Below are positions 856 through 57,000 of a stretch of DNA of 64,000 nucleotides, piece by piece; the first letter of the stretch is position 1, and each line of letters begins with the position of its first letter. The notes beneath the pieces were generated by a model. That model made no database searches, was not told the origin of the DNA, and saw only the letters and a program-made list of their open reading frames with translations. The position numbers and the translations under genes were made by a program. The stretch covers positions 340,290 through 404,289 of the forward strand of contig NIVC01000926.1 in NCBI GenBank assembly GCA_002269645.1, given 5' to 3'. Source of the DNA: Macrostomum lignano (lineage: Eukaryota).

Positions 856-3800
856 CTCGTAATCGGGGCACAATTCCTGCACTTTGCGTGTCATTCGCTC
901 GGGAAAGTGCGGATGAAACTTGAACAGCGATCCGTCGATGCCAACAGTCACGTGACCGCTAGGCTTAATCCGTTTCAACAACGAGGCGATGCCCGTAGCA
1001 ACCAGAAAAGCGGACCTGGTCGAAACGGCCTCGCAAATGCTCCGAACGATGACAGCTTCGATGGGATGGACAAGCTTCAAGCCCAAGTCAACAGTGAGCA
1101 GCTGGTCCGTGCTGTAGTAGTGCTTTGGCGGATCTCTCTCAATCTCGCTCAGGTATTTGGTCAGAAAGGTCATGGGCTGTACAAGGGACTCGGGCATGCG
1201 GCCGCCAAATATGATGCCATCATCCACTAGGGATTTGATAGCTAAGCGAACTATTTCGCCAAGGTACATGCCGCTGATGAGCTTCTCGAACACCTGAGTT
1301 GGAAAGGAATGGGGGGTGTTCGAACAGGCTTATTAAGTAACATAAATACAAATTTGGAAAGTAGAAACAAACATCCCCACAGTAGAATCCCATATCCAAA
1401 AGTACTCAGAAAAACTTAAATCTCCACAGTAGAATCCCTAATCCCAAAGTAGAATCCCACATCCCAACATTAGAATACCACATCCCTAGGGTAGAACCCC
1501 ACATCCCTACAGTAGAATCCCACATCCCTACGGTAGAATCCCACATCCCTACAGTAGAATCTCACATCCATACGGTAGAATCCCACATCCCTACAGTAGA
1601 ATCTCACATCCATACGGTAGAATCCCACATCCCTACAGTAGAATCTCACATCCCTACGGTAGAATCCCACATCTCTACAGTAGAATCCCACATCCCTACA
1701 GTAGAATCCCACATCCCTACGGTAGAATCCCACATCCCTAGGGTAGAATCCCACATCCCTACAGTAGAATCCCACATCCCTACAGTAGAATCTCACATCC
1801 ATACGGTAGAATCCCACATCCCTACAGTAGAATCTCACATCCCTACGGTAGAATCCCACATCCCTACAGTAGAATCTCACATCCCTACGGTAGAATCTCA
1901 TCCCTACGGTAGAATCCCACACCCCTACAGCAGAATCCCACATCCCCACAGCAGAATCCCGTACAGCGAAGAGGTTAAATGGGGACATACCAAATCCCCG
2001 CAGTGGAATCCTAAACTACACGCACCTGAAACCCCGGATTAAGACTCTTCTTATCGATCTCCCTATCAAAGTCGGTTTGGAACCGGTCCAAGCAGCCGTC
2101 GGCTCCGAAGTTGCCCCACTCTGTGTTGACAACCACCGGACCGTCCGGGCCGCCGTCGGACACTCCGGCCAGACTGTCCGAGTACCGCTCCATAGACGAG
2201 CGTCTCTCAACGTAGGCGGCATTGGAGCCCGTGCCAACGATGGCTGCAATTTGGCAGCGAGGATCTTCCAGGGCGCAGGAGGCCAGCGTGCCGACCGTGT
2301 CGTTGACCAGAGCGACGCAGACGATCGGCAAAGCTGCCTTGTCGATGGCTTCCTGGAAAGTTTGCCGGATTTAACTAAATGTTTACTAGTAATCGAGATC
2401 CCAGTTCAGACCCTGTTGATCCCGATTCTGACCCTATTGATCCCGATTCTGATCCTGTTGATCCCGATTCTGATCCTGTTGATCCCGATTCTGATCGTGT
2501 TTATCCCGTTTCTGATCCTGTCGATCCCGATTCTGATCCTGTTTATCCCGATTCTGATCCTGTTTATCCCGATTCTGATCCTTTTTATCCCGATTCTGAT
2601 CCTGTTTATCCCGATTCTGATCCTTTTTATCCCGATTCTGATCCTGTTTATCCCGATTCTGATCCTGTTTATCCCGATTCTGATCCTGTTGATCCCGATT
2701 CTGATTATTGATCCCGATTCTAATGTTATTGATCCCGATTCTGATCCTGTTGATCCCGATTCTGATTATTGATCCCGATTCTGATCCTGTTGATCCCGAT
2801 TCTGATCCTGTTGATCCAGATTCTGGCCGTGTTGATCCAGATTCTGGCCCTGTTGATCCCGATTCTGATCCTGTTTATCCCGATTCTGATCCTGTTTATC
2901 CCGATTCTGATCCTGTTTATCCCGATTCTGATCCTTTTTATCCCGATTCTGATCCTTTTTATCCCGATTCTGATCCTGTTTATCCCGATTCTGATCCTGT
3001 TGATCCCGATTCTGATTATTGATCCCGATTCTAATGTTATTGATCCCGATTCTGATCCTGTTGATCCCGATTCTGATTATTGATCCCGATTCTGATCCTG
3101 TTGATCCCGATTCTGATCCTGTTGATCCAGATTCTGGCCGTGTTGATCCAGATTCTGGCCCTGTTGATCCCGATTCTGATCCTGTTGATCCCGATTCTGA
3201 TGTTATTGATCCCGATTCTGATCTCGTTGATCCCGATTCTGATCCTGTTGATCCCGATTATGACCCTGTTGATCCCGATTCGGACCCTGTTGATCCCGAT
3301 TCTAATCATATTGATCCCGATTCTGATCCTGATTAAGCTTAAATCTGCAAAATTGGTTTCGCTCACCTGCAGCAGCTTGCAGACATCATGGCCCACAACC
3401 CCTTTAGCCGCAAAGCCTTTAGTCCACATAATCAAACTGCCGCTGCTCAGCCCGTGCTGTTCAACAGGGAAGGAGAAGGTGAAGCCCAGCTTCAATCGCT
3501 CGCCATCAGGTCCGGCAGACAGTTGATTAGCTTGCAAAAAATCCCGAAGAGTTCCAGCAATGAAGGTAAAAAGGGCGGCACCATCGCCGAGCATCAGCTC
3601 CTGAGAGTTTGATATAAAATTAAGTTGAGTGTCTATTTATGCTACTTCAAGTAGCAATGAAAACATTCTAGAAATAAAAACTGAAAAAATATAGTAGCTA
3701 AAATTAATTGAAGCTCTAAAATTGTAAGCTACTGAAAGTAGACATGCATGACTAGCTAGTTTGCGAGTTCGCACCTGCGGAACGGCGTACACGTCTTCGA

Positions 3801-17619: not shown

Positions 17620-30683
<13,064 letters not shown>

Positions 30684-36616: not shown

Positions 36617-39600
36617 ATGGGAGCTTGTTTTTCGACGAAATCCGGGTATGAGGTACTGCAAGACGATGTAAGTTTCCCAGCGAGTACCGTAGAGTATGAT
36701 CAGTGGAATCGATATTTTTTATGCTTCTACACTGTATTTTTGGTCATTTGCTTTTGATTTTCCTGAGATGTCAAGTCTTGGGGGGTTTCTGAGATGTGAG
36801 GCGGCGGCTTGGTCAGGCGAGAAGTCTGCGTTTCGTCGACCTGCTTTTAAGAGACGCTGAAATCTGCGACCCCCGCGGACTCGATTGCCCAGGATTGCTG
36901 TAGTTTGTTGTTGTTGTTGTTGCTGAGATGTCAAGTCTTGGGGGATTCCCGATATGTCAAGGCTTAAGAGGGAATTGCTGAGTTGTCAAGGGGAGATCAT
37001 ATTTTATTGAGGGATTTGCATGAACTGTCGAGGCGACTACATGATTTATTGAGACGATAGCAGGAATTATCTAGCAGGTAGGACGATTTTAAAGAGAGTA
37101 GCATGACATATTGAGGGAACAACATGGTGTGTTGTAGATTTACAGGTAAAGCATGAAACTTCGAGGGGATTTCTCGGTAAAAAGTTCCTGATAAAGCGTT
37201 TCCAGGGAATAGTTTGAAATTTCCAGGTATAGCGTGAGAGCAGGAGAGCAGGGGATATCAATGAAAAATTGCAAGAGATATAGCTAAGAGATATCGATGG
37301 GATGGCTAGAGATGCCAATTGTTAGCAGGGGATATCAAGAGATCCAGAGAGCTAGAGATACGAGCTATCAAGAGATAGCTAGAGATATCAAGGGGATAGC
37401 AAGAGTTATTTAGCGCATAGTATAGGGAATAATTTAGGGGATATCTAGGTGAGAACATAGCGTGATTCAGTTTAATAGTTTTTTATTTCCTAGGATATTA
37501 AAAGCGTGTTTTTCTTTCCCCAGAGGGGGATTTGGTATGCTAGTTCCCTTTATTGCTTTGAGTCGCACTAGGCAGCTGCAACTGATGTACTCGTACGTAT
37601 TTACCTTTTTTGAAGATAAGCTTTAACTTAGCTAATTGGATCGCCTTTAACTTTTTGCAGATTCCATTCAATCGAATCTACCAGCCAGGAAGAAGAAACG
37701 AGGCAGAAGCCCCAATTCCTCGGGAGGACGAAGAACGAAACGAGCAAAAAGTCCTAATTCTGGAGGAAGGCACCCCCATTGCCTGCACTAGCCGATGGAA
37801 TACTGATTACGCAATAGTTGCCAAAGATCTTCACAATTCCAAACTAATCAAACCTAATGAAAACCGCCGCGCCTGCCACAAAATCGAAGTCATAACTTAT
37901 AGATCCGATACGGTAGCGATTCGACAGTTGTGCGACTTTTAACATCTTTGTCTGGCTATTAAAGCTTTTGCTGACAATCTTCGGCTGTCAGTCAAAAGTT
38001 GTCGCACGGAAGACACTCTGGTTGGACACCATGCGACAGCGTTTGTACAAGCTGGAATACAAATGCAGTAATGGAGTCAAAGTGAAACCAGAGCAGGTTT
38101 TGCAACGTGCGATCTCTCGAATTGGCGAACGCAAGTACGATTCCAAATGGAACAATGACCAGGACTTCGTTCGCTGGTGCTGCACCAAGCACTGCGACAA
38201 CCAGAAGTATTTTGAAATTCCAGTCAAGTCAATTGATCAACTGAAAAGCGTTTTTGACGCAAACGGAAGGAAAAAATATGCACTTATTGATGCAAACGGA
38301 AGGAAAAGATATGCACTTATTGATGCAAACGGAAAGAATAGATATGCACTTATTGATGCAAACGGAAAAAATAGATATGCACTTATTGATGCAAACGGAA
38401 AGAATAGATATGCACTTATTGATACAAACAGAAGAAAAAGATATGCACTTTTTGATGCAAACAGAAGGAAAATATATGCGCTTATTGATTCAAAACTGTT
38501 AACTTTATTGTCCAATTTCACTGAGCTCAGACACCAGGATAAATCACATATGGTACTTACATGTACTGTAGACAATTTGTGTAAAGACACTTCATGCTGC
38601 AGTGGAAACAGTTCGTGTTGCAGTGAAGGCACTTCATCTTGTTGTAGAAACACTTTGTGTTGCAGAGAAGACACTTCGTGCTGCAGAGAAGACACTTCGT
38701 GCTGCAGAGAAGACACTTCGTGCTGCAGAGAAGACACTTCGTGCTGCAGAGAAGACACTTCGTGCTGCAGAGAAGACACTTCGTGCTGCAGAGAAGACAC
38801 TTCGTGCTGCAGAGAAGACACTTCGTGCTGCAGAGAAGACACTTCGTGTTGCTGTGAAAACACTCCGTTTTGTTGCAAACGTTATAAGTACTTCTTTACG
38901 GTTCAGAAAGTCGAAGTAAAGTCAAGAACAAGAAATAAAGAAATAAAGAGCTTCGGGCTTTCAGCTGTTTCTTAAGAGACTGCAGAGACTGCAGAGGCTG
39001 CAAAAGAGTTCTTTGAAAAAAAGACAAAAAAATTGATCGGCAAGTCAATCTGGTTGAACCGTCGTGGCACAGTTCAGACTAAAATCGATAGCGAGACCTT
39101 CTGCAACTGGCTACAAAAGTCAACAACTCCCACGCTAGATGACATTGAGCTGCTGCCATGGGCTGGCGACTGTTGCTGCAGTTGCTGCAGTTCTCGTCTT
39201 TGCTGTGACTCTAAATGCGGTCAACAACCGACATTCAACAGTCATGAATTTGGTGAACACGTTGTCGGTGAACACGTCGAAGTAAGCCCGAAGCAGGGTA
39301 CTCCGTACCATATGCTTATCACGGAGATCGTTAATCCAAAAACCAATGATTGCGTTTACAAAGGCATAACCTCCCGATATAAACAAGGTATTCAACATGA
39401 GCAATTTAAGAAACTCAAAGCAATCGTAACCTTCGACCAGGTTGAGTTGCTTGCGTTTAACGACGAACCCAAAGATTTCACTCTCGCTAATAGAGAGGCT
39501 TCGGGCACAATATCTGATTGCTGGAATTTCTTCTGGATCACATTTCTTGTGCTGTCGTTTATCGTGACGCATTTCCGGTTATTAAAAATTCTTGCTGTGG

Positions 39601-40196
39601 CGGCGCCGCTATTTAAAAATGATAATTGCACAACTCAGCACCTTTTGAAGCCTCCGCTGTGTTTTGACGTTCTTGATGAAGACTGCAACTGTCCATGGGA
39701 GCAGATCATCATAATCGTTTATGCCAGCATTGCTGGGGTTTGCTTACTCATCTTGATCGGACTGCACTTGTTCGAAGTCCCGTGCTCGAGAGGCTGTGTC
39801 AACGGGTGCCGTCACAGACCGCTTAAGACTACTCGCAAACGGATGAGCTGGAGTTTGATTGAAAGCTCAATTAACTTTGTGATTGTTTTTGGTTTGATTT
39901 ATTTTCAACTTTGGCTCAGGCAAAAATTGAGTAGTGAGTCGAGATTAGGCAACACATATTCATTTCTCATCACGTCTGCTGTCTCCATCTGCTTGTTTCT
40001 CATCAGAGCGCTGCTGCCAAGATGGATCCGCTGCTGCTGCCCGAGCAAGGATGCGGCTTACTGCTCACACTGCTGCTTCTGCTGCTGGTGCTCTGGCAGC
40101 ACCGAATGTTGCGGGGTGGCTGATCACGAAGCCATCATTACCAAAGAAGAGGTCCATTTCAACAGGCAAAATGAACCAGCAGCAGCAAATGCATAG
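36617..40196 (+). CDS. Predicted myristoylated membrane protein with tandem degenerate LRAT (H-box/NC) units. Exons 36617-36667, 37661-37912, 37992-40196; internal TAA at 38973-38975 unresolved
   Basis: MGACFSTKSGYEVLQDD|GTAAGT joins in phase to tttttgcag|IPFNR; a 79-nt GT-AG intron joins ORF 37610 to ORF 37968 in frame; EQVLQRAISRIGERKYDSKWNNDQDFVRWCCT resembles LRAT RAxSRxGExxYxLxxNNCEHFxxWC; ORF 39033 is in the same frame and has about four hydrophobic helices. Confidence 0.6.
38257..38490 (+). repeat. 33-bp in-frame repeat encoding DANGRKRYALI, about 7 copies
   Basis: gatgcaaacggaaggaaaagatatgcacttatt tandem copies within ORF 37968..38975. Confidence 0.9.
38585..38875 (+). repeat. 21-bp in-frame repeat encoding CCREDTS, >10 copies including degenerate flanks
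   Basis: tgctgcagagaagacacttcg tandem copies. Confidence 0.9.
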
Positions 40197-41034
40197 ATGA
40201 GTGAACTGCAGTTTTCTGGGTTTTGAAAATAGAAATAGTTCAGTACCGCCTTTGCATGGTGTGTTACAGAATTTACTTAACCTAGGAAATGATACGCTCG
40301 TATTAATTTTTCAGAGGTGTACTATGACCCGACTGTTTTAACGCTATTCTGTCCCATAGTTCCATAGGTTTACGTGTTGCTTGTGTGTTTTTCTAAAAAT
40401 TTTATGTATTTTAAACGTGTTGACTATAAATTTTAACTTTTACATTAAACAATATTTTCATATTTTTGATTGGTACATTATTAACATACGAGCTGTCATT
40501 GATTTAGAAATGATAAATTCACTAGTTACATGCTAGCTGTTAGATCTTATAGTTTTAGTTACAGTTATCTGTGTTGCTTCAAAAAATTCTCGTTAGTAGC
40601 TATTTTTTACTCTAATACATTGCCAATGTGTTAATCCCATTTCTTTTCATTAAAATTGACGTATTCGCGCGAACTTCTCTTATAGCTACATATTAGGTAC
40701 AGTAGCACATTTTATGCGCTTCCATGAGAAGCGAAGTATAAATTGGAATACTAGAAAAGCTGATTAATTTTAATGCACTCAGTAACATGAGAGCTCACTC
40801 TAAAATATGAGCTGCTGTATTTAAAGTATCGAGTTAGGGAGATCACGAGATGTAAAAAACAATCGCATGAAACCAAGACGACATATACTGATAAAGTCAT
40901 TGGCTAAAAGCATTTTTTAGAACTGCTATTGGACGGAGCTGCATTTGTAGCTGTTTATAAAGTCTCAATCATACTCAAACCTGCCTGTAGAAATTTTCCC
41001 ATTAAGAAATCCCAGCTGTCTTTGAAAAAGAAGG

Positions 41035-41760
41035 ATGAAATATTCGTTAAGCAACTTCCAAGCGTTTCAAGCGCTTTTCGGCATTGTAATCCAGTTGCTG
41101 CCTGCAGTGCGGGCTCTGGCGTGTCCGGATCCGTTCAGCCCCGAGGCAGGCAGGTGCGTGTTCGTGAGCACTGCTCAAGATTTCACCTGGTGCGAAGCCA
41201 ACCAGCGGTGCGCTGCAATCCAGGGCGAGCTGCTCAACTCGTACAGCTCGCTGCAGCTGCTGGCTCAAGGCAGCTTTCCCAGCCTCCGCTGCAGCTGCTG
41301 GCTCAAAGGCAGCTTTCCCAGCCTCCGCTGCAGCTGCTGGCTCAAAGGCAGCTTTCCCAGCCTCCGCTGCAGCTGCTGGCTCAAAGGCAACTTTCCCAGC
41401 CTCCGCTGCAGCTGTTCCCTGTGGCTTGGAGTCAGCGACTTGGCCGATGAACGGAACACAAGCAAATCAGGCTGGGTGAAGATCAACGGCAATGGAATTT
41501 TTCCCCTCGATAATGCTTTGTGGGCTTCAAATATGCCATCTAACAATGGGAATCAGGACTGCTTGGTGCAGTCTGAAGGAGAGGCGCTACTCAAGGATTT
41601 AAAGTGTTCAACCCGTCGTGGCTACGCATGCGAGTTTGTTGCCAAAGATGAACTTCAGACTGGGCCGACCGGCTCCGCTGCCTCTGTGCCTTCGGGATCT
41701 GCCCTCATGAGTGTGAATCGGTCAATTTTTGTGCACAAGCCCCAAACTACAACTATGTGA
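41035..41760 (+). CDS. Secreted C-type-lectin-like protein, third paralog, with an internal 39-bp expansion and no PAN tail in this exon
   Basis: RCVFVSTAQDFTWCEANQRCAAIQGELLNSYSSLQLL and LWLGVSDLADER..GWVKING align with the 12-14 kb genes. Possible donor GTGAGT at ~41756. Confidence 0.8.
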   Translation: MKYSLSNFQAFQALFGIVIQLLPAVRALACPDPFSPEAGRCVFVSTAQDFTWCEANQRCAAIQGELLNSYSSLQLLAQGSFPSLRCSCWLKGSFPSLRCSCWLKGSFPSLRCSCWLKGNFPSLRCSCSLWLGVSDLADERNTSKSGWVKINGNGIFPLDNALWASNMPSNNGNQDCLVQSEGEALLKDLKCSTRRGYACEFVAKDELQTGPTGSAASVPSGSALMSVNRSIFVHKPQTTTM

Positions 41761-51052: not shown

Positions 51053-54000
51053 ATGTCTAACAATAGCCGATCAGCTGTTAACGGCACCAACGGTGTCGAG
51101 ATAGACGACTCGCTGTACAGTCGGCAGCTGTACGTGCTCGGTCACGAAGCTATGCGCAGTATGGCCACATCCAATGTGCTCATCTGCGGCCTGCGCGGTC
51201 TGGGCATTGAGATTGCTAAGAATGTCATCCTCGGCGGAGTGAAGTCGGTCAGCCTGATGGACAACTCGCTGCCAGATTGGTCAGACCTCACTAGCCAGTT
51301 CTACATTGACGAGTCAGATATTGGCGGCCCGAAATCCCGGGCTCAAATTTGTCTGCCTAAGCTGGCCGAACTCAACAATTATGTTCGAGTATCGGCGCTT
51401 GAAGGCGAACTAACTGAGGATGCGATTAAACAGTTCCGAGTTGTAGTGCTGACTGACTGGCCAATGGCTGAGCAGTTGCGCATTAATCAGGTGTGCAGGA
51501 AGCATGGGGCCAGGTTTATTACCGCCTCTGCTGCCGGCCTGTTTGGCGGCATCTTCTGCGACTTTGGCGATGCGTTCTCCGTTACTGACAAGAATGGCGA
51601 GCCGTGCAAGAATTTCATAGTAGACTGGATTGAGCAATCGGCAGATGGGACTGTGACCTGCGCTCAGGACTCTAGGCACGATCTGGAGGATGGGGACTAT
51701 GTCACCTTCACTGGGGTGCAGGGCATGACCCCGTTGAATGGCTGCGCTCCACGGAAAGTGCAGGTGAGTTGTGCCACGCTGGCTCTGGGTTTGAGAAGAA
51801 TGTTTTAGAATATTTAAAACGATTAAAAATCTCTCCCAAATCCACAAGAATCACTCATAAATCCAACTAAAATTATTAATAAATCCACCTAAAAAATCTC
51901 CTAAATTCTCGTAAGAATCGCTCCTAAATGCCCCTAAGAATCGCTCCTAAATATACCTAAAAATCCCTCCTAAATACACCTAAGAATCGCTGCTAAATAT
52001 ACCTAAGAATCGCTCCTAAATACACCTAAGAATCGCTCCTAAATATACCTAAGAATCGCTGCTAAATATACCTAAGAATCGCTCCTAAATAGACCTAAAA
52101 ATCGCTCCTAAATACACCTACGAATCGTTCCTAAATCTGCTAAGAATCGCTCTTATAAATCCATCTAAAAGTCACTTCTAAATCCTCTTAAGAATCACTC
52201 CTAAATCCCACTCGAATCGTCCATAAAATTAAATAGAAAAAAACACCCGTTTCAAGGACGTTTCGTCAGTTCACATTAATTTCCCAGGCTATGTACGCAA
52301 AGGTATTGCTTAGCTAGCATTTCCTCAGTATCAATTTTCTGCATTCCGCACTACATCAGTACCAAGTGCGGCCTGTTAAAGTTTAGTCAATTACTGTGCA
52401 CTAGTGACTGTCTGCCCCATGGCAGACCCAATGAGTTCAAGTATAAAAATAGATCTTCGTATATTTTTGCGTCAGTTTTACTACACCAAAAGTAAATTTC
52501 GATTGTCATGTACCTTGTTTATTACTCTACTAAGAGTAGAAATATGAAAATATGAAAACTAAATTTTCAGGTGGTGAACCCAAGCAGATTCAAAATCGGC
52601 GACACTAGCGGATTCCCGCCCTACGAGAAGGGCGGGTATTGCAAGGAAGTGAAAATGCCGGAACAGATCAGCTTTAAATCTCTGCAGGATGCATTGGCTA
52701 GTCCCGAGTTTGTCATCACGGACTTTGCCAAGTTTGACAGGCCGGCACAGATTCACGCACTGTTCCAGGTAATTTTTATTTCACTTAAATAATCACTGCA
52801 TATCTCAGCCACGGATCTATCAATCATCAGCTCATATCTATCAAACTGATCTATCAATCATCAGCTGACATCTATCAAACTGATCTATCAGTCATCAGCT
52901 GACATCTATCAAACTGATCCATCAATCACCAGCTGACATCTATCAAACTGATCTATCAATCATCAGCTCAAATCTATCAAACTGATCTATCAATCATTAG
53001 CTGACATCTATCGCACTGATCTATCGTGCAACTATCAATCCCCAGGCCCTGTCCGAGTTCGAATCCCGCCATTCGGGCCGCCGGCCGGAGCCCGGCAACG
53101 CCGCGGAAGCCGCCGAGCTGGCCAGAATCGCTGAGGAGATCGCCAAGCGCCAGGGTCTCGAGCCCGCCCCCGACCCCAAACTGGCGGCCACCTTCGCTCA
53201 GGTCAGCTCGGGTCAGCTGGCCCCGGTCCATGCCGTGATTGGCGGCACAGCCAGCCAGGAAGTGATGAAGGCCTGCTCTGGCAGGTTCAATCCTATCAGA
53301 CAGTTTCTGTACTTTGACGCGCTCGAATGCTTGCCCGAAGGTGCCGCACCCTCGGTGGCGCCAGCCGACGGGAAGCGGTACACCGGCCAGACTGCCGTGT
53401 TTGGTGACGAATTTCAGGTGAGCCAGTTTTCTAATTTATTTATTTTCCGAAATCCATGACATCTATAAGCATTTGCGCTACTTTAGATGGCTTAGTGTCA
53501 TTAGCTCGTAATTGTGAAATAGTTAGTCCCCAAATGGCAGGTGTCATTAATCCTCTATTGCCCAAATGCATTAATCCCTAAATTACAGGTGTCATTAATC
53601 CTCTATTGCCCAAATGCATTAATCCCTAAATGGCAGGTGTCATTAATCCTCTATTTTAAAATTCATTAATCCCTAAATGACAGGTGTCATTAATCCTCTA
53701 TTTTAAAATTCATTAATCCCTAAATGACAGGTGTCATTAATCCTCTATTGCCCAAGTGCATTAATCCCCAAATGACAGGTGTCATTAATCCTCTATTGCC
53801 CTAATTCTTAACCCCCAAATGACAGGTGTCATTAATCCTCTATTGCCCAAATGCATTAATCCCCAAATGGCAGGTGTCATTACTCCTTTATTGCCCAAAT
53901 GCATTACTCCCCAGATGACAGGTTTCATTAATCCTTTATTCCCCAACTTCTTTAATCCTCTATTGCCCAAATGCATTAATCCCCAAATGACAGGTGTCAT

Positions 54001-57000
54001 TAATCCTTTATTCCCCAAATTCATTAATCCCCTTATGGCAGGTGTCTTTAATCCTCTTTTGCCCAAATCAATTATTCTCCTTCCATCTGACAACTCACTT
54101 CAGTCTCGCCTCGGCTCCGCCCGAGTGTTCCTGGTTGGCGCAGGCGCTCTGGGCTGCGAGCTGTTGAAAAACTTCGCCCTGATGGGCATCGGCACCGGCA
54201 GCCGCGGTGGTCAGGTGATCGTCACCGACATGGACCGGATCGAGAAGAGCAATCTGAACCGGCAGTTCCTGTTCCGGCCCTGGGACATTGGCCGCGCCAA
54301 GTCCACAACTGTCGCCAAGGCTGCCATCAGGATGAATCCGAATTTCAAAGTCGAATCGCAGGAGAATCGAGTCGGTCCAGAGACCGAGGCCATCTATACC
54401 GATGATTTCTTTGAAAACCTCACCGTTGTTGTCAACGCATTGGACAACGTCGAGGCCAGGACTTACGTTGATCGGCGTTGTGTTTATTATAGGAAGCCGC
54501 TGATGGAGTCCGGCACCACAGGGACCAAAGCCAACACTCAGGTTGTGCTGCCGTTTCTCACCGAGTCCTACAGCAGCTCGCAGGATCCGCCGGAGAAAAC
54601 CACGCCAATTTGTACTCTGAAGAATTTCCCCTACCAGATTGAGCACACTATTCAGTGGGCTAGGTGAGTTGCCGTTTTTCACAATCACAGGTGCCATTTT
54701 TCTTTAATCACGGGTGCCATTTGTCTTAATCACGGGTGCCATTTTTCTTACTCACGGGTGCCATTTTTCTTAGTCACGGGTGCTACTTTGTTAGTCACGG
54801 GTGCCATTTTTCTTAATCACGGGTGCCATTTTTCTTAATCACGGGTGCCATTTGTCTTAGTCACGGGTTCCAGTTTTATTAATCACGGCTGTCATTTTTA
54901 TTAATCACGGCTGTCATTTTTATTAATCACGGCTGTCATTTTTATTAATCACGGGTGTCATTTTTATTAATCACGGCTGTCATTTTTATTAATCACGGGT
55001 TCCAGTTTTATTAATCACGGCTGTCATTTATATTAATCACGGCTGTCATTTTTATTAATCACGGGTGTCATTTTTTATCACGGGTTTATTATTAATCACG
55101 GGTTCCATTTTTATTAATCACGGTGCTATTTTTTTAAAGTCACAGGTGTATGAATTATAATTGCCAATATTTTGAGTTATTTTTTACTTTTCACCCAGGG
55201 ATTACCTGGAGGGCGTGTTCTGCCAACAGTCGCAGACTCTGCACCAGTTCCTTCACGATCCCACATTCATGGAGCGAACCCTGGCTCTGCCCGGCAACCA
55301 GGGCATTGAGACGCTGGAGGCCATCAAGACCAACCTGTTGGACAAGCGGCCGAAAGATTTTGCCGACTGCATCACCTGGGCCAGGATGCAGTTTGAAGAG
55401 ATCTTTAACAATCAGATTCGGCAGCTGTTGTTCAACTTTCGCCTAACCAGGTTTGTGCGGTTTTAATTGGTGTCAACCTTGGTTGACCTCAGTCCCATTG
55501 TGTGACCGTCCGTTATAGAAGACTTCTGCACTCAATTGATCCCAACCCCCTGCGTGGAATGCCTTCAGGTGACCCTATCTCTACCCCATTGATATCTTCA
55601 TGTGACCCCATCTACTGCACAATGTCCTCAGGTGACCTCATCTACCCCACAATGTCCTCAGGTGACCCCATCTACCCCACAATGTCCTCAGGTGACCCCA
55701 TCTACCCCACAATGTCCTCAGGTGACCCCATCTACCCCACAATGTCCTCAGGTGACCCATCTACCCCACAATGTCCTCAGGTGACCCCATCTACCCCACA
55801 ATGTCCTCAGGTGACCCCATCTACCCCACAATGTCCTCAGGTGACCCCATCTACTCCAAAATGTCCTCAGGTGACCCCATCTACCCCAAAATGTCCTCAG
55901 GTGACCCCATCTACTCCAAAATGTCCTCAGGTGACCCCATGTACCCCAAAATGTCTTCAGGTAACCCCATCTACCCCACAATGTCCTCAGGTGACCCCAT
56001 CTACTCCAAAATGTCCTCAGGTGACCCCATCTACCCCACAATGTCCTCAGGTGACCCCATCTACCCCACAATGTCCTCAGGTGACCTCATCGGGCGCTCC
56101 GTTCTGGAGCGGCGTGAAGAAGTGCCCAACTCCGCTGTCCTTCGACGCGGCCGACCCGACCCACTGCGAGTTCGTCACCGCCGCCGCCAACCTTCGCGCT
56201 TTCGTGTTCGGCGTCCCCGGGGCTTTCGGCGATCGCAAAGCCATCGGCCAGCTGGCGGGTTCCATCCGTGTGCCCGAGTTCGTGCCCCGGTCGGGCGTCC
56301 GCATAGCAACCAACGACACGGAGCTGCAGAGCCAGCTGTCCGTGTCCTCCTCGACCGAGCCGGACGCGCTGGACAATCTGGCCAAGGATCTGCTCGAAGC
56401 CAAGTCGCAGTTCGCCGCCTCCGGCCTCGCCGACTCCGTCCGAGTGGTGGAATTCGAGAAAGACGACGACTCGAACTATCACATGGATTTTATTACCGCT
56501 TGCAGCAACCTGAGGGCGGCCAACTACGATATTGAGCAGGCCGACCGGCACAAGACTAAACTCATTGCCGGCCGCATTGTGCCCGCCATCGCCACCACAA
56601 CCTCCGTAGCTGTCGGCCTGGTCTGCCTGGAGCTCTACAAACTGCTGCAGGGTCGGCAGAAGCTCGAGGACTACAAGAACGGCTTCTTGAATCTGGCGCA
56701 CCCGTTCTTCGCCTTCTCCGAGCCGCTGCCGCCTGCCAAGCACAAGTATCACGACACCGAGTTCACCCTGTGGGATCGGTTCGAGATTGACGGCGACATG
56801 ACTGTGCAGCAGTTGATTGATCATTTCCAGGTGAGTCTCCACTTAGTCTCTGGTAATTTTCTTCACTGTCTCAGTGTGAGCTTCAACTGTTATTGATTTC
56901 TTATTTGTAGGAGAAGCACAAGCTGGAGGTGACCATGATCACCCAGGGCATCTCCATGCTGTTCTCCTTCTTCATGCCGCCTGCCAAGAAGAAGGCTCGG

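Follow-up and report, generated by a model that had tools for sequence, protein, structure and literature searches.

The gene described here, which codes for a protein of a Macrostomum-like flatworm, lies at positions 36617 to 40196 of the window, i.e., of the whole 64,000-nucleotide stretch of DNA that was analysed. Two groups of Macrostomum lignano sequences serve as points of reference: A0A1I8HFC8 (hereafter P0001), a 680-aa 'uncharacterized protein', and a long family of proteins of 800-1400 aa annotated as 'LRAT domain-containing protein' (e.g., PAA65928.1, PAA66167.1, PAA47239.1). The features of the gene are the following.

36617 to 36667, plus strand: exon 1, with ATG at 36617 and 17 codons (MGACFSTKSGYEVLQDD), delimited by sequence and frame.
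36668 to 37660, plus strand: putative intron 1, 993 nt, GTAAGT...TTTTGCAG, placed by splice signals and frame only.
37661 to 37912, plus strand: exon 2, encoding a linker and the N-terminal half (beta strands) of LRAT-like unit 1.
37760 to 38192, plus strand: LRAT/PLAAT-like unit 1, aa 51-168, interrupted by intron 2 (Pfam, profile against PDB, AlphaFold, Foldseek).
37913 to 37991, plus strand: intron 2, 79 nt, GTAGCG...GCTGTCAG, frame kept.
37992 to 38972, plus strand: exon 3 up to the in-frame stop, which completes unit 1 with its C-terminal half and contains the two minisatellites and the start of unit 2.
38254 to 38494, plus strand: in-frame coding minisatellite, 33 nt x 7.3 (YALIDANGKNR), of which P0001 has at most one copy.
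38490 to 39122, plus strand: degenerate LRAT-like unit 2, SKLLTLLSNF...KYFFTVQKVEV...KKLIGKSIW...IDSETFCNW, collinear with unit e of the long family.
38584 to 38868, plus strand: in-frame coding minisatellite, 21 nt x 13.6 (CCREDTS), inside unit 2 and not in P0001.
38973 to 38975, plus strand: in-frame TAA, between ORF 37968-38975 and ORF 39033-40196, both in the same frame.
38976 to 40196, plus strand: continued reading frame, 406 codons plus TAG, in which unit 2 ends and is followed by a Cys cluster, unit 3, four TM helices and a Cys-rich tail.
39252 to 39533, plus strand: degenerate LRAT-like unit 3, GEHVVGEHVEV..PYHMLITEI..VYKGITS..QVELLAFNDE..SDCWNFF (profile comparison).
39522-39614, 39702-39773, 39852-39917 and 39957-40016, plus strand: four predicted TM helices (Kyte-Doolittle hydropathy).
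40029 to 40112, plus strand: Cys-rich juxtamembrane tail, RCCCPSKDAAYCSHCCFCCWCSGSTECC; the 55 residues from R781 to the C-terminus include 11 Cys.

Because exon 2, whose acceptor at 37661 reads ttttgcag followed by ATT, has no ATG ahead of the LRAT unit, an upstream coding exon is needed. Between 34.5 and 37.6 kb, the interval examined, exon 1 with its directly adjoining GTAAGT donor at 36668 is the sole sensible candidate that begins with ATG, ends in phase 0 and offers a GTRAG donor to that acceptor. Sequence and frame agree here with a previous sequence-only reading, which had proposed a 17-codon MGACFSTKS exon with a donor splicing in phase, and all the peptide strings that it quoted are found in the sequence. 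The 79-nt intron that it placed between the two ORFs keeps the frame, and the junction 37912>37992 is further supported because the LRAT-unit HMM is contiguous across it, with positions 1-40 matched up to exactly 37912 and positions 42-107 from 37989 onward. At this same site the P0001 model carries a 27-aa insert, which is probably unspliced intron 2. Short internal repeats are present in intron 1, and Rfam gave no match in the window.

Exon 1 carries an N-myristoylation-type motif (G2, A3, S6, T7), and its Cys4 may be palmitoylated. As the sequence itself shows, MGACFST fits the pattern G-{EDRKHPFYW}-x(2)-[STAGCN]-{P}, in an exon that is itself a model. No counterpart of the MG exon occurs in the homologue models, P0001 beginning with MPKDASGNK and the long family with MQ, MA, MS or MH; N-myristoylation is predicted at the level of a motif, on a one-candidate exon model.

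Against Pfam PF04970 (gathering cut-off, 24.3 bits), unit 1 reaches 27.4 and 28.8 bits, and the profile of a 44-unit family finds 4q95 in the PDB at E 6.9e-10 and PLAAT3 at about 1e-7; this profile was needed, since phmmer with unit 1 against the PDB sequences gave no match. The AlphaFold model of the unit (pLDDT 79.5) shows five strands followed by two helices, and Foldseek places at the top the PLAAT3 crystal structures 4fa0, 4dot, 7zom and 7c3z, with probability 1.00 and a TM-score of 0.62-0.69 on target. Judged by profiles and by the predicted structure of the spliced unit, the permuted NlpC/P60 domain of unit 1 is of the LRAT/PLAAT type, as the sequence-only reading had suggested. A word-indexed protein search with unit 1 also returned no match, which reflects a failure of tool sensitivity, as P0001, recovered by exhaustive search, shares a 13-residue word with it. 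In the 44-unit alignment the three triad columns are all replaced: exon 2 supplies Asp66 in the first-His column and Thr96 in the second-His column, and Asp157 stands at the position of the catalytic Cys, with NNDQDF where NNCEHF would be expected. The substitutions previously read by eye (H>D, H>T, C>D) are those found in the alignment.

The remaining units are degenerate. Neither unit 2 nor unit 3 alone matches Pfam LRAT, BLASTP among units 1, 2 and 3 detects no significant similarity, and an LRAT-unit HMM iterated over 29 proteins takes in unit 1 and leaves units 2 and 3 of the window copy unmatched, with sub-threshold matches of the N-terminal half for unit e of the long family and unit 3 of P0001. 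At the profile level the relationship emerges: the unit-e/2 family aligns with the 44-unit LRAT profile with probability 90.7 (P 1.3e-6), the unit-f/3 family with probability 84.6 (P 6.8e-6), and unit d with unit e at P 0.0013. Moreover, hhalign of the window copy plus P0001 against the C-terminus of the long family (P 2.4e-4) sets units 2 and 3 in register with its last two units, in the same order, unit 3 facing the NCEHF-bearing one. Profile and collinear homology (P about 1e-6 to 2e-4) support the view that units 2 and 3 are decayed LRAT units, so that the earlier proposal of tandem LRAT units holds fully for unit 1 and at the profile level only, not by Pfam or BLASTP, for the other two. 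A weak similarity of unit 3 to Peptidase_S80 (Pfam E 0.008-0.05, 13-16 bits) lies below the cut-off of 23.4, has no other support and was rejected. The full-length AlphaFold model, built on a 9-sequence alignment, was left out of the fold search because its mean pLDDT is 38.8.

The claim that all units are catalytically dead fares differently along the chain. It is sustained for unit 1, where the triad is replaced, and for unit 2, which has Asn instead of His at the first-His column and DSETF with Ser468 at the catalytic-Cys column. It is not supported for unit 3, which keeps the first His (H541, also in P0001 and the long family), with Thr at the second-His column and Cys611 lying 0-3 residues from the catalytic column in this copy only, P0001 having no such Cys. 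The helix of unit 3 that is expected to bear the catalytic Cys has been shortened and continues into TM1. Because His541 is kept and Cys611 is near, this unit may retain some activity.

Beyond unit 3, the previous count of about four TM helices is matched by the four hydropathy segments and by four long helices (485-519, 547-577, 587-624 and 629-659; pLDDT 50-66) in a low-confidence AlphaFold model of 712 aa. TM1 starts inside the last helix of unit 3, so that a hydrophobic anchor directly follows the LRAT domain. The TM segments obey the positive-inside pattern (n=4); the first loop contains conserved Cys residues (C..C..DC.CPWE), the second is strongly basic (CRHRPLKTTRKRMSW), and the whole domain is conserved in P0001, as is CCPS.D.AYC.HCC..CWCS of the tail. 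The Cys clusters noticed before can be located at 39168-39218 and in the tail, whose Cys residues are candidate S-acylation sites.

P0001 is the only full-length homologue (E 1.5e-121, 46-47% identity), collinear from unit 1 to the Cys tail, and a profile of the window copy plus P0001 returned nothing else from the 5.8-billion set. The two have in common NNSQDFVRWCCTKHCDN in unit 1, KLIGKSIW...FCNWL, VGEHVEV...H..ITEI, the four TM segments and the Cys motif of the tail. P0001 differs in lacking the 33-nt and 21-nt arrays, a stop at the position of the TAA, the Cys near the border of unit 3 and TM1, and, in its current model, the MG first exon, while it seems to retain intron 2 (27 extra residues). 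As for the long family, its third-from-last unit matches unit 1 at E 3e-13 to 1e-9, and the order of units is the same: a dead unit of the WNSSRDFARWCSIKH type, a dead unit of the DFCxWL type and a terminal unit, then several hydrophobic C-terminal segments, although the profile alignment of the two TM regions is not significant (P 0.35). The long proteins differ from the window copy in having three additional units upstream and neither a Cys-rich tail nor an MG start. Their last unit retains NNCEHF (Pfam LRAT, 33 bits), whereas in the window copy and P0001 it is shortened and the motif is missing; one long-family member, P0006, also lacks the terminal NNCEHF. By homology, the window gene descends from a Macrostomum family of multi-LRAT membrane proteins, of which it is a shorter and decayed side branch. 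The architecture, which had not been recognised from any described family, is present end to end in P0001 and, as to unit order and TM segments, in the long family: it is already in the databases as unnamed proteins, and what we describe is a lineage-specific pseudoenzyme and not a new kind of protein. We found no paper in the literature combining Macrostomum and LRAT. With a neighbouring UBA1 exon as query, a tool that misses some relatives gave best matches of only 58% identity, none of them a Macrostomum entry.

A single continuous protein had also been assumed. The in-frame TAA at 38973-38975, overlooked earlier, divides the two long ORFs, so that the product is not one open reading frame here. 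The stop falls inside a stretch conserved with P0001 (SFGLSAVS, stop, ETAE...AKEFF in the window copy; SFGSTAVPVGIAKEFL in P0001), and the frame that follows has no ATG in its first 112 codons and is 46-47% identical to P0001 along its length. All in-frame GT...AG pairs that could remove the TAA as an intron were listed; those with the best donors, 38916 (GTAAAG) and 38881, delete residues conserved with P0001 (KS..I.SFG..AV or AKEF), and for this reason such an intron is judged unlikely. With a TAA in coding sequence that is conserved, this copy may fail to give the full-length product. Upstream of it, the two minisatellites make up together about 525 nt of exon 3 and split unit 2 as earlier delimited; eight copies of the CCREDTS array are identical, and both minisatellites are recent. 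A 9-nt triplication lies directly 3' of the TAA, and the surrounding genome is rich in minisatellites.

These observations lend themselves to more than one explanation. The window copy could be a young pseudogene or null allele, with a TAA that arose as a true nonsense mutation and minisatellites that expanded under relaxed constraint, leaving at most a 428-aa N-terminal fragment functional. The homologue reads through the stretch that the stop interrupts, every intron candidate costs conserved residues, a 9-nt triplication comes directly after the stop, and the coding sequence has taken up eight identical 21-nt copies and a 33-nt array that are absent from P0001, in a genome where minisatellites abound. 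However, this is a single lesion: the 406 codons past it are open, with TM helices, loops and Cys tail conserved with P0001, both array periods are divisible by three and keep the frame, and a single-base error of assembly or reads, or a heterozygous variant, would look alike. We hold this account to be possible but doubtful. It is unlikely that the gene model is instead wrong at its ends, the MGACFS exon being a chance ORF with the true start elsewhere (e.g., in a 5' exon that is trans-spliced or lies farther away), or the two ORFs belonging to two transcripts. Such a proposal would explain why the MG exon is absent from every homologue model and has an unremarkable Kozak context, and why a TAA formally splits the locus, yet the need of exon 2 for an upstream coding exon speaks against it, as does the MG exon being the only strong phase-0 donor candidate within 3 kb, and the ORF after the TAA, open for 112 codons before its first ATG, continues the homologue's sequence unbroken.

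The third explanation concerns unit 3, which might still be an enzyme using His541 and Cys611 as a minimal Cys-His dyad at the membrane entry of the catalytic helix; on this view the gene, like its longer paralogues, would encode a PLAAT-like acyltransferase or phospholipase that is embedded in the membrane and has two regulatory pseudo-units in front. Those relatives do carry an intact NNCEHF unit at the same position, adjoining the TM anchor, His541 is common to the window copy, P0001 and the long family, DCWNF resembles NCEHF, and Thr occupies the second-His column even in the apparently intact long-family unit. Nevertheless, P0001 has Trp or Leu in place of the Cys, about 8-12 residues ahead of the Cys helix are deleted with respect to intact units, the MAFFT alignment puts the Cys three columns off the catalytic one, Pfam LRAT does not match the unit, and in this copy it lies downstream of the stop codon, all of which makes retained catalysis very unlikely.

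Among known proteins, LRATD1 and LRATD2 (FAM84A/B) are LRAT-domain proteins that are said to lack the catalytic Cys, and they provide the nearest functional analogy for a lipid-anchored pseudo-LRAT, although they are a vertebrate family with one LRAT domain per protein and no TM domain. None of them is among the 19 matches (E <= 1e-3) of the exhaustive search, so that orthology to LRATD is unsupported. They are proven NMT substrates, experimentally N-myristoylated (PMC8689648). PLAAT/HRASLS1-5 and LRAT itself (Pfam PF04970) are circularly permuted NlpC/P60 proteins (PMC3142127), and the resemblance to them lies in the fold and domain family of unit 1 and in a membrane anchor placed directly after a catalytic-type domain; however, each of them has one domain, in which the His-His-Cys triad is active, and one TM helix at the C-terminus, whereas the window protein has three units, none with an intact motif, and four TM helices. 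Many LRAT units per chain are also seen in Ptychodera flava XP_070560329.1, Potamilus streckersoni KAK3603616.1 and Dreissena polymorpha KAH3867275.1, where intact (NNCEHF) and Cys-less (NRSSDF, NTSRDL) units are mixed. These hemichordate and bivalve proteins are distant (E 1e-7 to 1e-4, unit 1 only), differ in unit number and contain nothing equivalent to the four-TM domain or Cys tail.

Altogether, the best reading, to which we give a probability of about 0.6, is that of a non-catalytic, lipid-anchored membrane scaffold derived from decayed LRAT units, possibly recently inactivated in this copy. The read-through product would begin with a short N-terminus bearing a myristoylation/palmitoylation-type signal, continue with three consecutive LRAT/PLAAT-type modules that would have lost the Cys-His catalytic apparatus, and end with a four-helix membrane domain and a Cys-rich tail, predicted to be cytosolic. 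Acylation of the N-terminus and of the Cys clusters would cooperate with the TM bundle to hold such a scaffold flat on the cytosolic face of the membrane, where the pseudo-acyltransferase modules may bind lipid or partner proteins with no acyl transfer, by analogy with the Cys-less, N-myristoylated LRATD1/2; acylation, topology and scaffold role are inferred. If the TAA is active, the window copy would yield only a 428-aa myristoylated protein devoid of the membrane domain. The stop cuts unit 3 and the membrane domain off from units 1-2, and both minisatellites expanded recently; this copy may therefore be a recently truncated or inactivated allele.

A bolder and rather improbable extension of the scaffold reading would be that the macrostomid family comprises active membrane-anchored multi-LRAT acyltransferases together with shortened, fully decayed paralogues, which would have acquired a signal for dual acylation at the N-terminus, Cys arrays open to palmitoylation and a new four-TM domain, and would serve the active enzymes as regulatory or lipid-sensing partners, in-frame minisatellites of the CCREDTS type rapidly tuning the number of acylation sites.

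From the point of view of annotation, both public M. lignano models of the family are incomplete, and the stop codon of this copy needs checking. No general principle is changed by this case, which offers a concrete instance of a multi-domain pseudoenzyme built from the PLAAT/LRAT lipid-modifying fold, and, within one animal lineage, a decay series that leads from paralogues with an intact terminal unit to paralogues with none. M. lignano being a tractable flatworm model, its dead LRAT units are open to RNAi and in situ hybridisation, and they bear on the human pseudo-LRATs LRATD1/2.

The gene at 36617-40196 (+) comprises the following elements, the exons being placed by sequence and frame and the membrane segments by hydropathy:

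36617, + strand: ATG opening exon 1, 17 codons (MGACFSTKSGYEVLQDD), then a GTAAGT donor
37661-37912, + strand: exon 2, with the acceptor ttttgcag/ATT, 84 codons and the end ACG/GTAGCG
37992, + strand: start of exon 3, after an intron 2 of 79 nt ending gctgtcag/TCA
39522-39614, 39702-39773, 39852-39917 and 39957-40016, + strand: four hydrophobic segments

Frames agree across all exon junctions, in keeping with the exon and intron frames claimed by the sequence-only reading, whose quoted peptide strings are likewise all present. Moreover, with an HMM derived from 75 LRAT units, positions 1-40 stop exactly at 37912 and positions 42-107 begin at 37989, a homology that independently supports the second junction (37912>37992). 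Intron 1 carries a short motif (TGAGATGTCAAGTCTTGGGG...) twice, ~170 nt apart (36750-36800 and 36920-36991), as well as repeats of 29 nt (tandem) and 21 nt at 37362-37420.

Among 1.84 billion representatives, searched exhaustively with HMMER, 19 proteins matched, the best being an uncharacterised M. lignano protein of 680 aa (P0001, A0A1I8HFC8; E 1.5e-121), 46-47% identical to the gene model and collinear with it over the whole span between unit 1 and the Cys tail at the C-terminus. Its 27 extra residues, exactly at the position of intron 2, are probably an unspliced intron in the P0001 model. The next matches were M. lignano 'LRAT domain-containing' proteins of 800-1400 aa (the long family); tandem-LRAT proteins of a hemichordate and bivalves are more distant. 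In the long family, the third-from-last unit (WNSSRDFARWCSIKH) resembles unit 1 (E 3e-13 to 1e-9), the following one ends DFCxWL where unit 2 ends TFCNWL, and the last opens DHIIL..VHFIVTEWD..GVTYE..IEKVVHNSE, similar to GEHVEV..YHMLITEI..YKGITS..QVELLAFNDE of unit 3; unlike unit 3, it then has an intact NNCEHFVNYLIYG, followed by several hydrophobic segments. The exact architecture, previously taken to be unlike any described family, is already in UniProt as unnamed proteins, and a literature search found no paper linking Macrostomum with LRAT. The gene model resembles LRATD1/2, proven NMT substrates (PMC8689648), in being Cys-less with an NMT-type N-terminus. Nevertheless, the 19 matches included no LRATD protein, and its product would therefore not be an LRATD orthologue. 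Another M. lignano protein, of 70 aa (P0003, A0A1I8H6L1; compared over 37700-37890 and 38222-38244), shares 80% identity with exon 2, more than P0001 does, and its end SSQLIN is an out-of-frame reading of the FEIPVKSIDQL region, a picture suggesting that M. lignano has a copy of a closer paralogue or orthologue that carries a deletion and a frameshift.

Unit 1 (residues 51-168) matches Pfam LRAT (PF04970) with 27.4-28.8 bits, the gathering score being 24.3. In an alignment of 44 LRAT units taken from relatives, the first-His column (consensus HHxIV) holds Asp66, the second Thr96 (VITY for VIHY) and the nucleophile column Asp157 (NNDQDF for NNCEHF); therefore, the substitutions H>D, H>T and C>D read earlier are correct. 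The 44-unit profile matched the structure of a HRASLS3/LRAT chimera (4q95, E 6.9e-10), as well as those of PLAAT2, PLAAT3 and PLAAT4 across the whole domain. AlphaFold2, run on the same alignment, gave five strands then two helices (mean pLDDT 79.5, pTM 0.77), for which Foldseek placed PLAAT3 first in the PDB (4fa0, 4dot, 7zom, 7c3z; probability 1.00, E 5e-3 to 1e-2, target TM-score 0.62-0.69), followed by PLAAT4 at 0.96. Given these PLAAT3 matches, the permuted NlpC/P60 fold expected from the sequence-only reading is indeed found.

Units 2 and 3 alone gave no Pfam match, no BLASTP similarity to unit 1 and no match by an iterated LRAT HMM. In profile comparisons, the gene model plus P0001 aligned with the long-family C-terminus in the expected register (P 2.4e-4), and against the 44-unit profile the unit-2 family reached a probability of 90.7 (P 1.3e-6, full domain covered) and the unit-3 family 84.6 (P 6.8e-6). 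We accept both as putative decayed LRAT units, supported largely via their M. lignano counterparts; the full-length AlphaFold run (pLDDT 38.8) yielded no confident structure of them. In unit 2, the first-His column is occupied by Asn and the Cys column by Ser468. Unit 3 presents Thr at the second-His column, as does the intact long-family unit. Residual activity of unit 3 would find an argument in its first His (H541), which is kept, and in Cys611 (SDCWNFF), 0-3 columns from the catalytic position in the copy in the window; however, P0001 has Trp or Leu there, and ~8-12 residues are lost before the nucleophile helix, which runs straight into TM1, making such activity highly doubtful. Because of H541 and Cys611, the death of all three units is likely rather than proven. 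Thus, the tandem dead LRAT units proposed earlier hold for the replaced triad of unit 1 and, by profile, for the nature of units 2 and 3, while the death of unit 3 is unproven.

The two long ORFs (37968-38975, 39033-40196) lie in the same frame, an in-frame TAA (38973-38975) coming between them. Since P0001 is continuous at this point (SFGSTAVPVGIAKEFL vs SFGLSAVS-stop-ETAETAEAAKEFF), an intron over the TAA seems unlikely. Of the in-frame GT...AG pairs that could excise it, each loses P0001-conserved residues or has poor signals. The options are a nonsense mutation of recent origin, an error of heterozygous or assembly type, or read-through. The 406 codons downstream are still open and conserved, so the lesion, if real, is young. 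That the copy in the window is itself a young pseudogene, as a stop where P0001 reads through would suggest, is a minority possibility of some weight, against which these same codons stand. Directly 3' of the TAA, a 9-nt unit (GAGACTGCA) occurs almost three times (38976-39002, +; ETAETAEA) and is missing from P0001, so that the stop borders a small, unstable repeat. As for a wrong 5' end or a split gene, P0001 starts MPKDASGNK, without the MG exon. Within 34.5-37.6 kb, a start at ATG combined with a phase-0 end at a GTRAG donor is found in just two ORFs, of which the MG exon alone is sensible, and exon 2 contains no ATG upstream of its encoded domain; we consider this alternative improbable.

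Two tandem arrays, which like the stop are absent from the sequence-only reading, take up roughly one quarter of the first ORF: 33 nt x7.3 (YALIDANGKNR) and 21 nt x13.6 (CCREDTS, eight copies identical), the latter physically interrupting unit 2. Both periods preserve the reading frame, and P0001 has neither array. The whole window (1-64000; eukaryotic, GC content 45%) is packed with minisatellites of period 20-48 nt (53 TRF rows with score >= 150; for instance 1-803, 2397-3331, 20509-21317, 23177-23839, 27919-28813 and 55558-56091), and the coding arrays therefore fit a genome-wide tendency. Several long ORFs, such as 6-923, are merely translated repeats. Just 3' of the gene, a 39-nt repeat (41249-41414, +; x4.3, 98% identical) is translated as QRQLSQPPLQLLA repeats inside ORF 40929-41450. 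Among the neighbours, UBA1 (ubiquitin-activating enzyme E1) exons lie at 51053-56896 (+), with ThiF, E1_FCCH, UBA_E1_SCCH and E1_UFD domains, minisatellites in the introns and best database relatives only about 58% identical. An ORF at 24768-25481 (-) with mariner/Mos1-type transposase HTH domains (HTH_48, E 5e-13) is probably a transposon remnant, and those at 26098-26835 (-) and 29904-30683 (-), with weak, sub-threshold Pfam matches of ankyrin-repeat and FERM_f0-like type, may represent either repeat artefacts or exons belonging to unannotated neighbours.

The four hydrophobic segments are kept in P0001 and appear as long helices in the AlphaFold model (pLDDT 50-66). Cys residues are conserved in loop 1 (C..C..DC.CPWE), a strongly basic character marks loop 2 (CRHRPLKTTRKRMSW) and the tail holds 11 Cys in 55 residues. 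By the positive-inside rule, an N-in, C-in topology would fit, so that both the Cys-rich tail and the LRAT units would be cytosolic.

The protein is within the LRAT/PLAAT fold family, well described together with its permutation (PMC3142127), and fails the catalytic criteria of that family. With a probability of about 0.6 for the statement as a whole, far higher for domain identity and far lower for function, an active multi-LRAT ancestor would have given rise here to a derived, non-catalytic and multiply lipid-anchored membrane scaffold.
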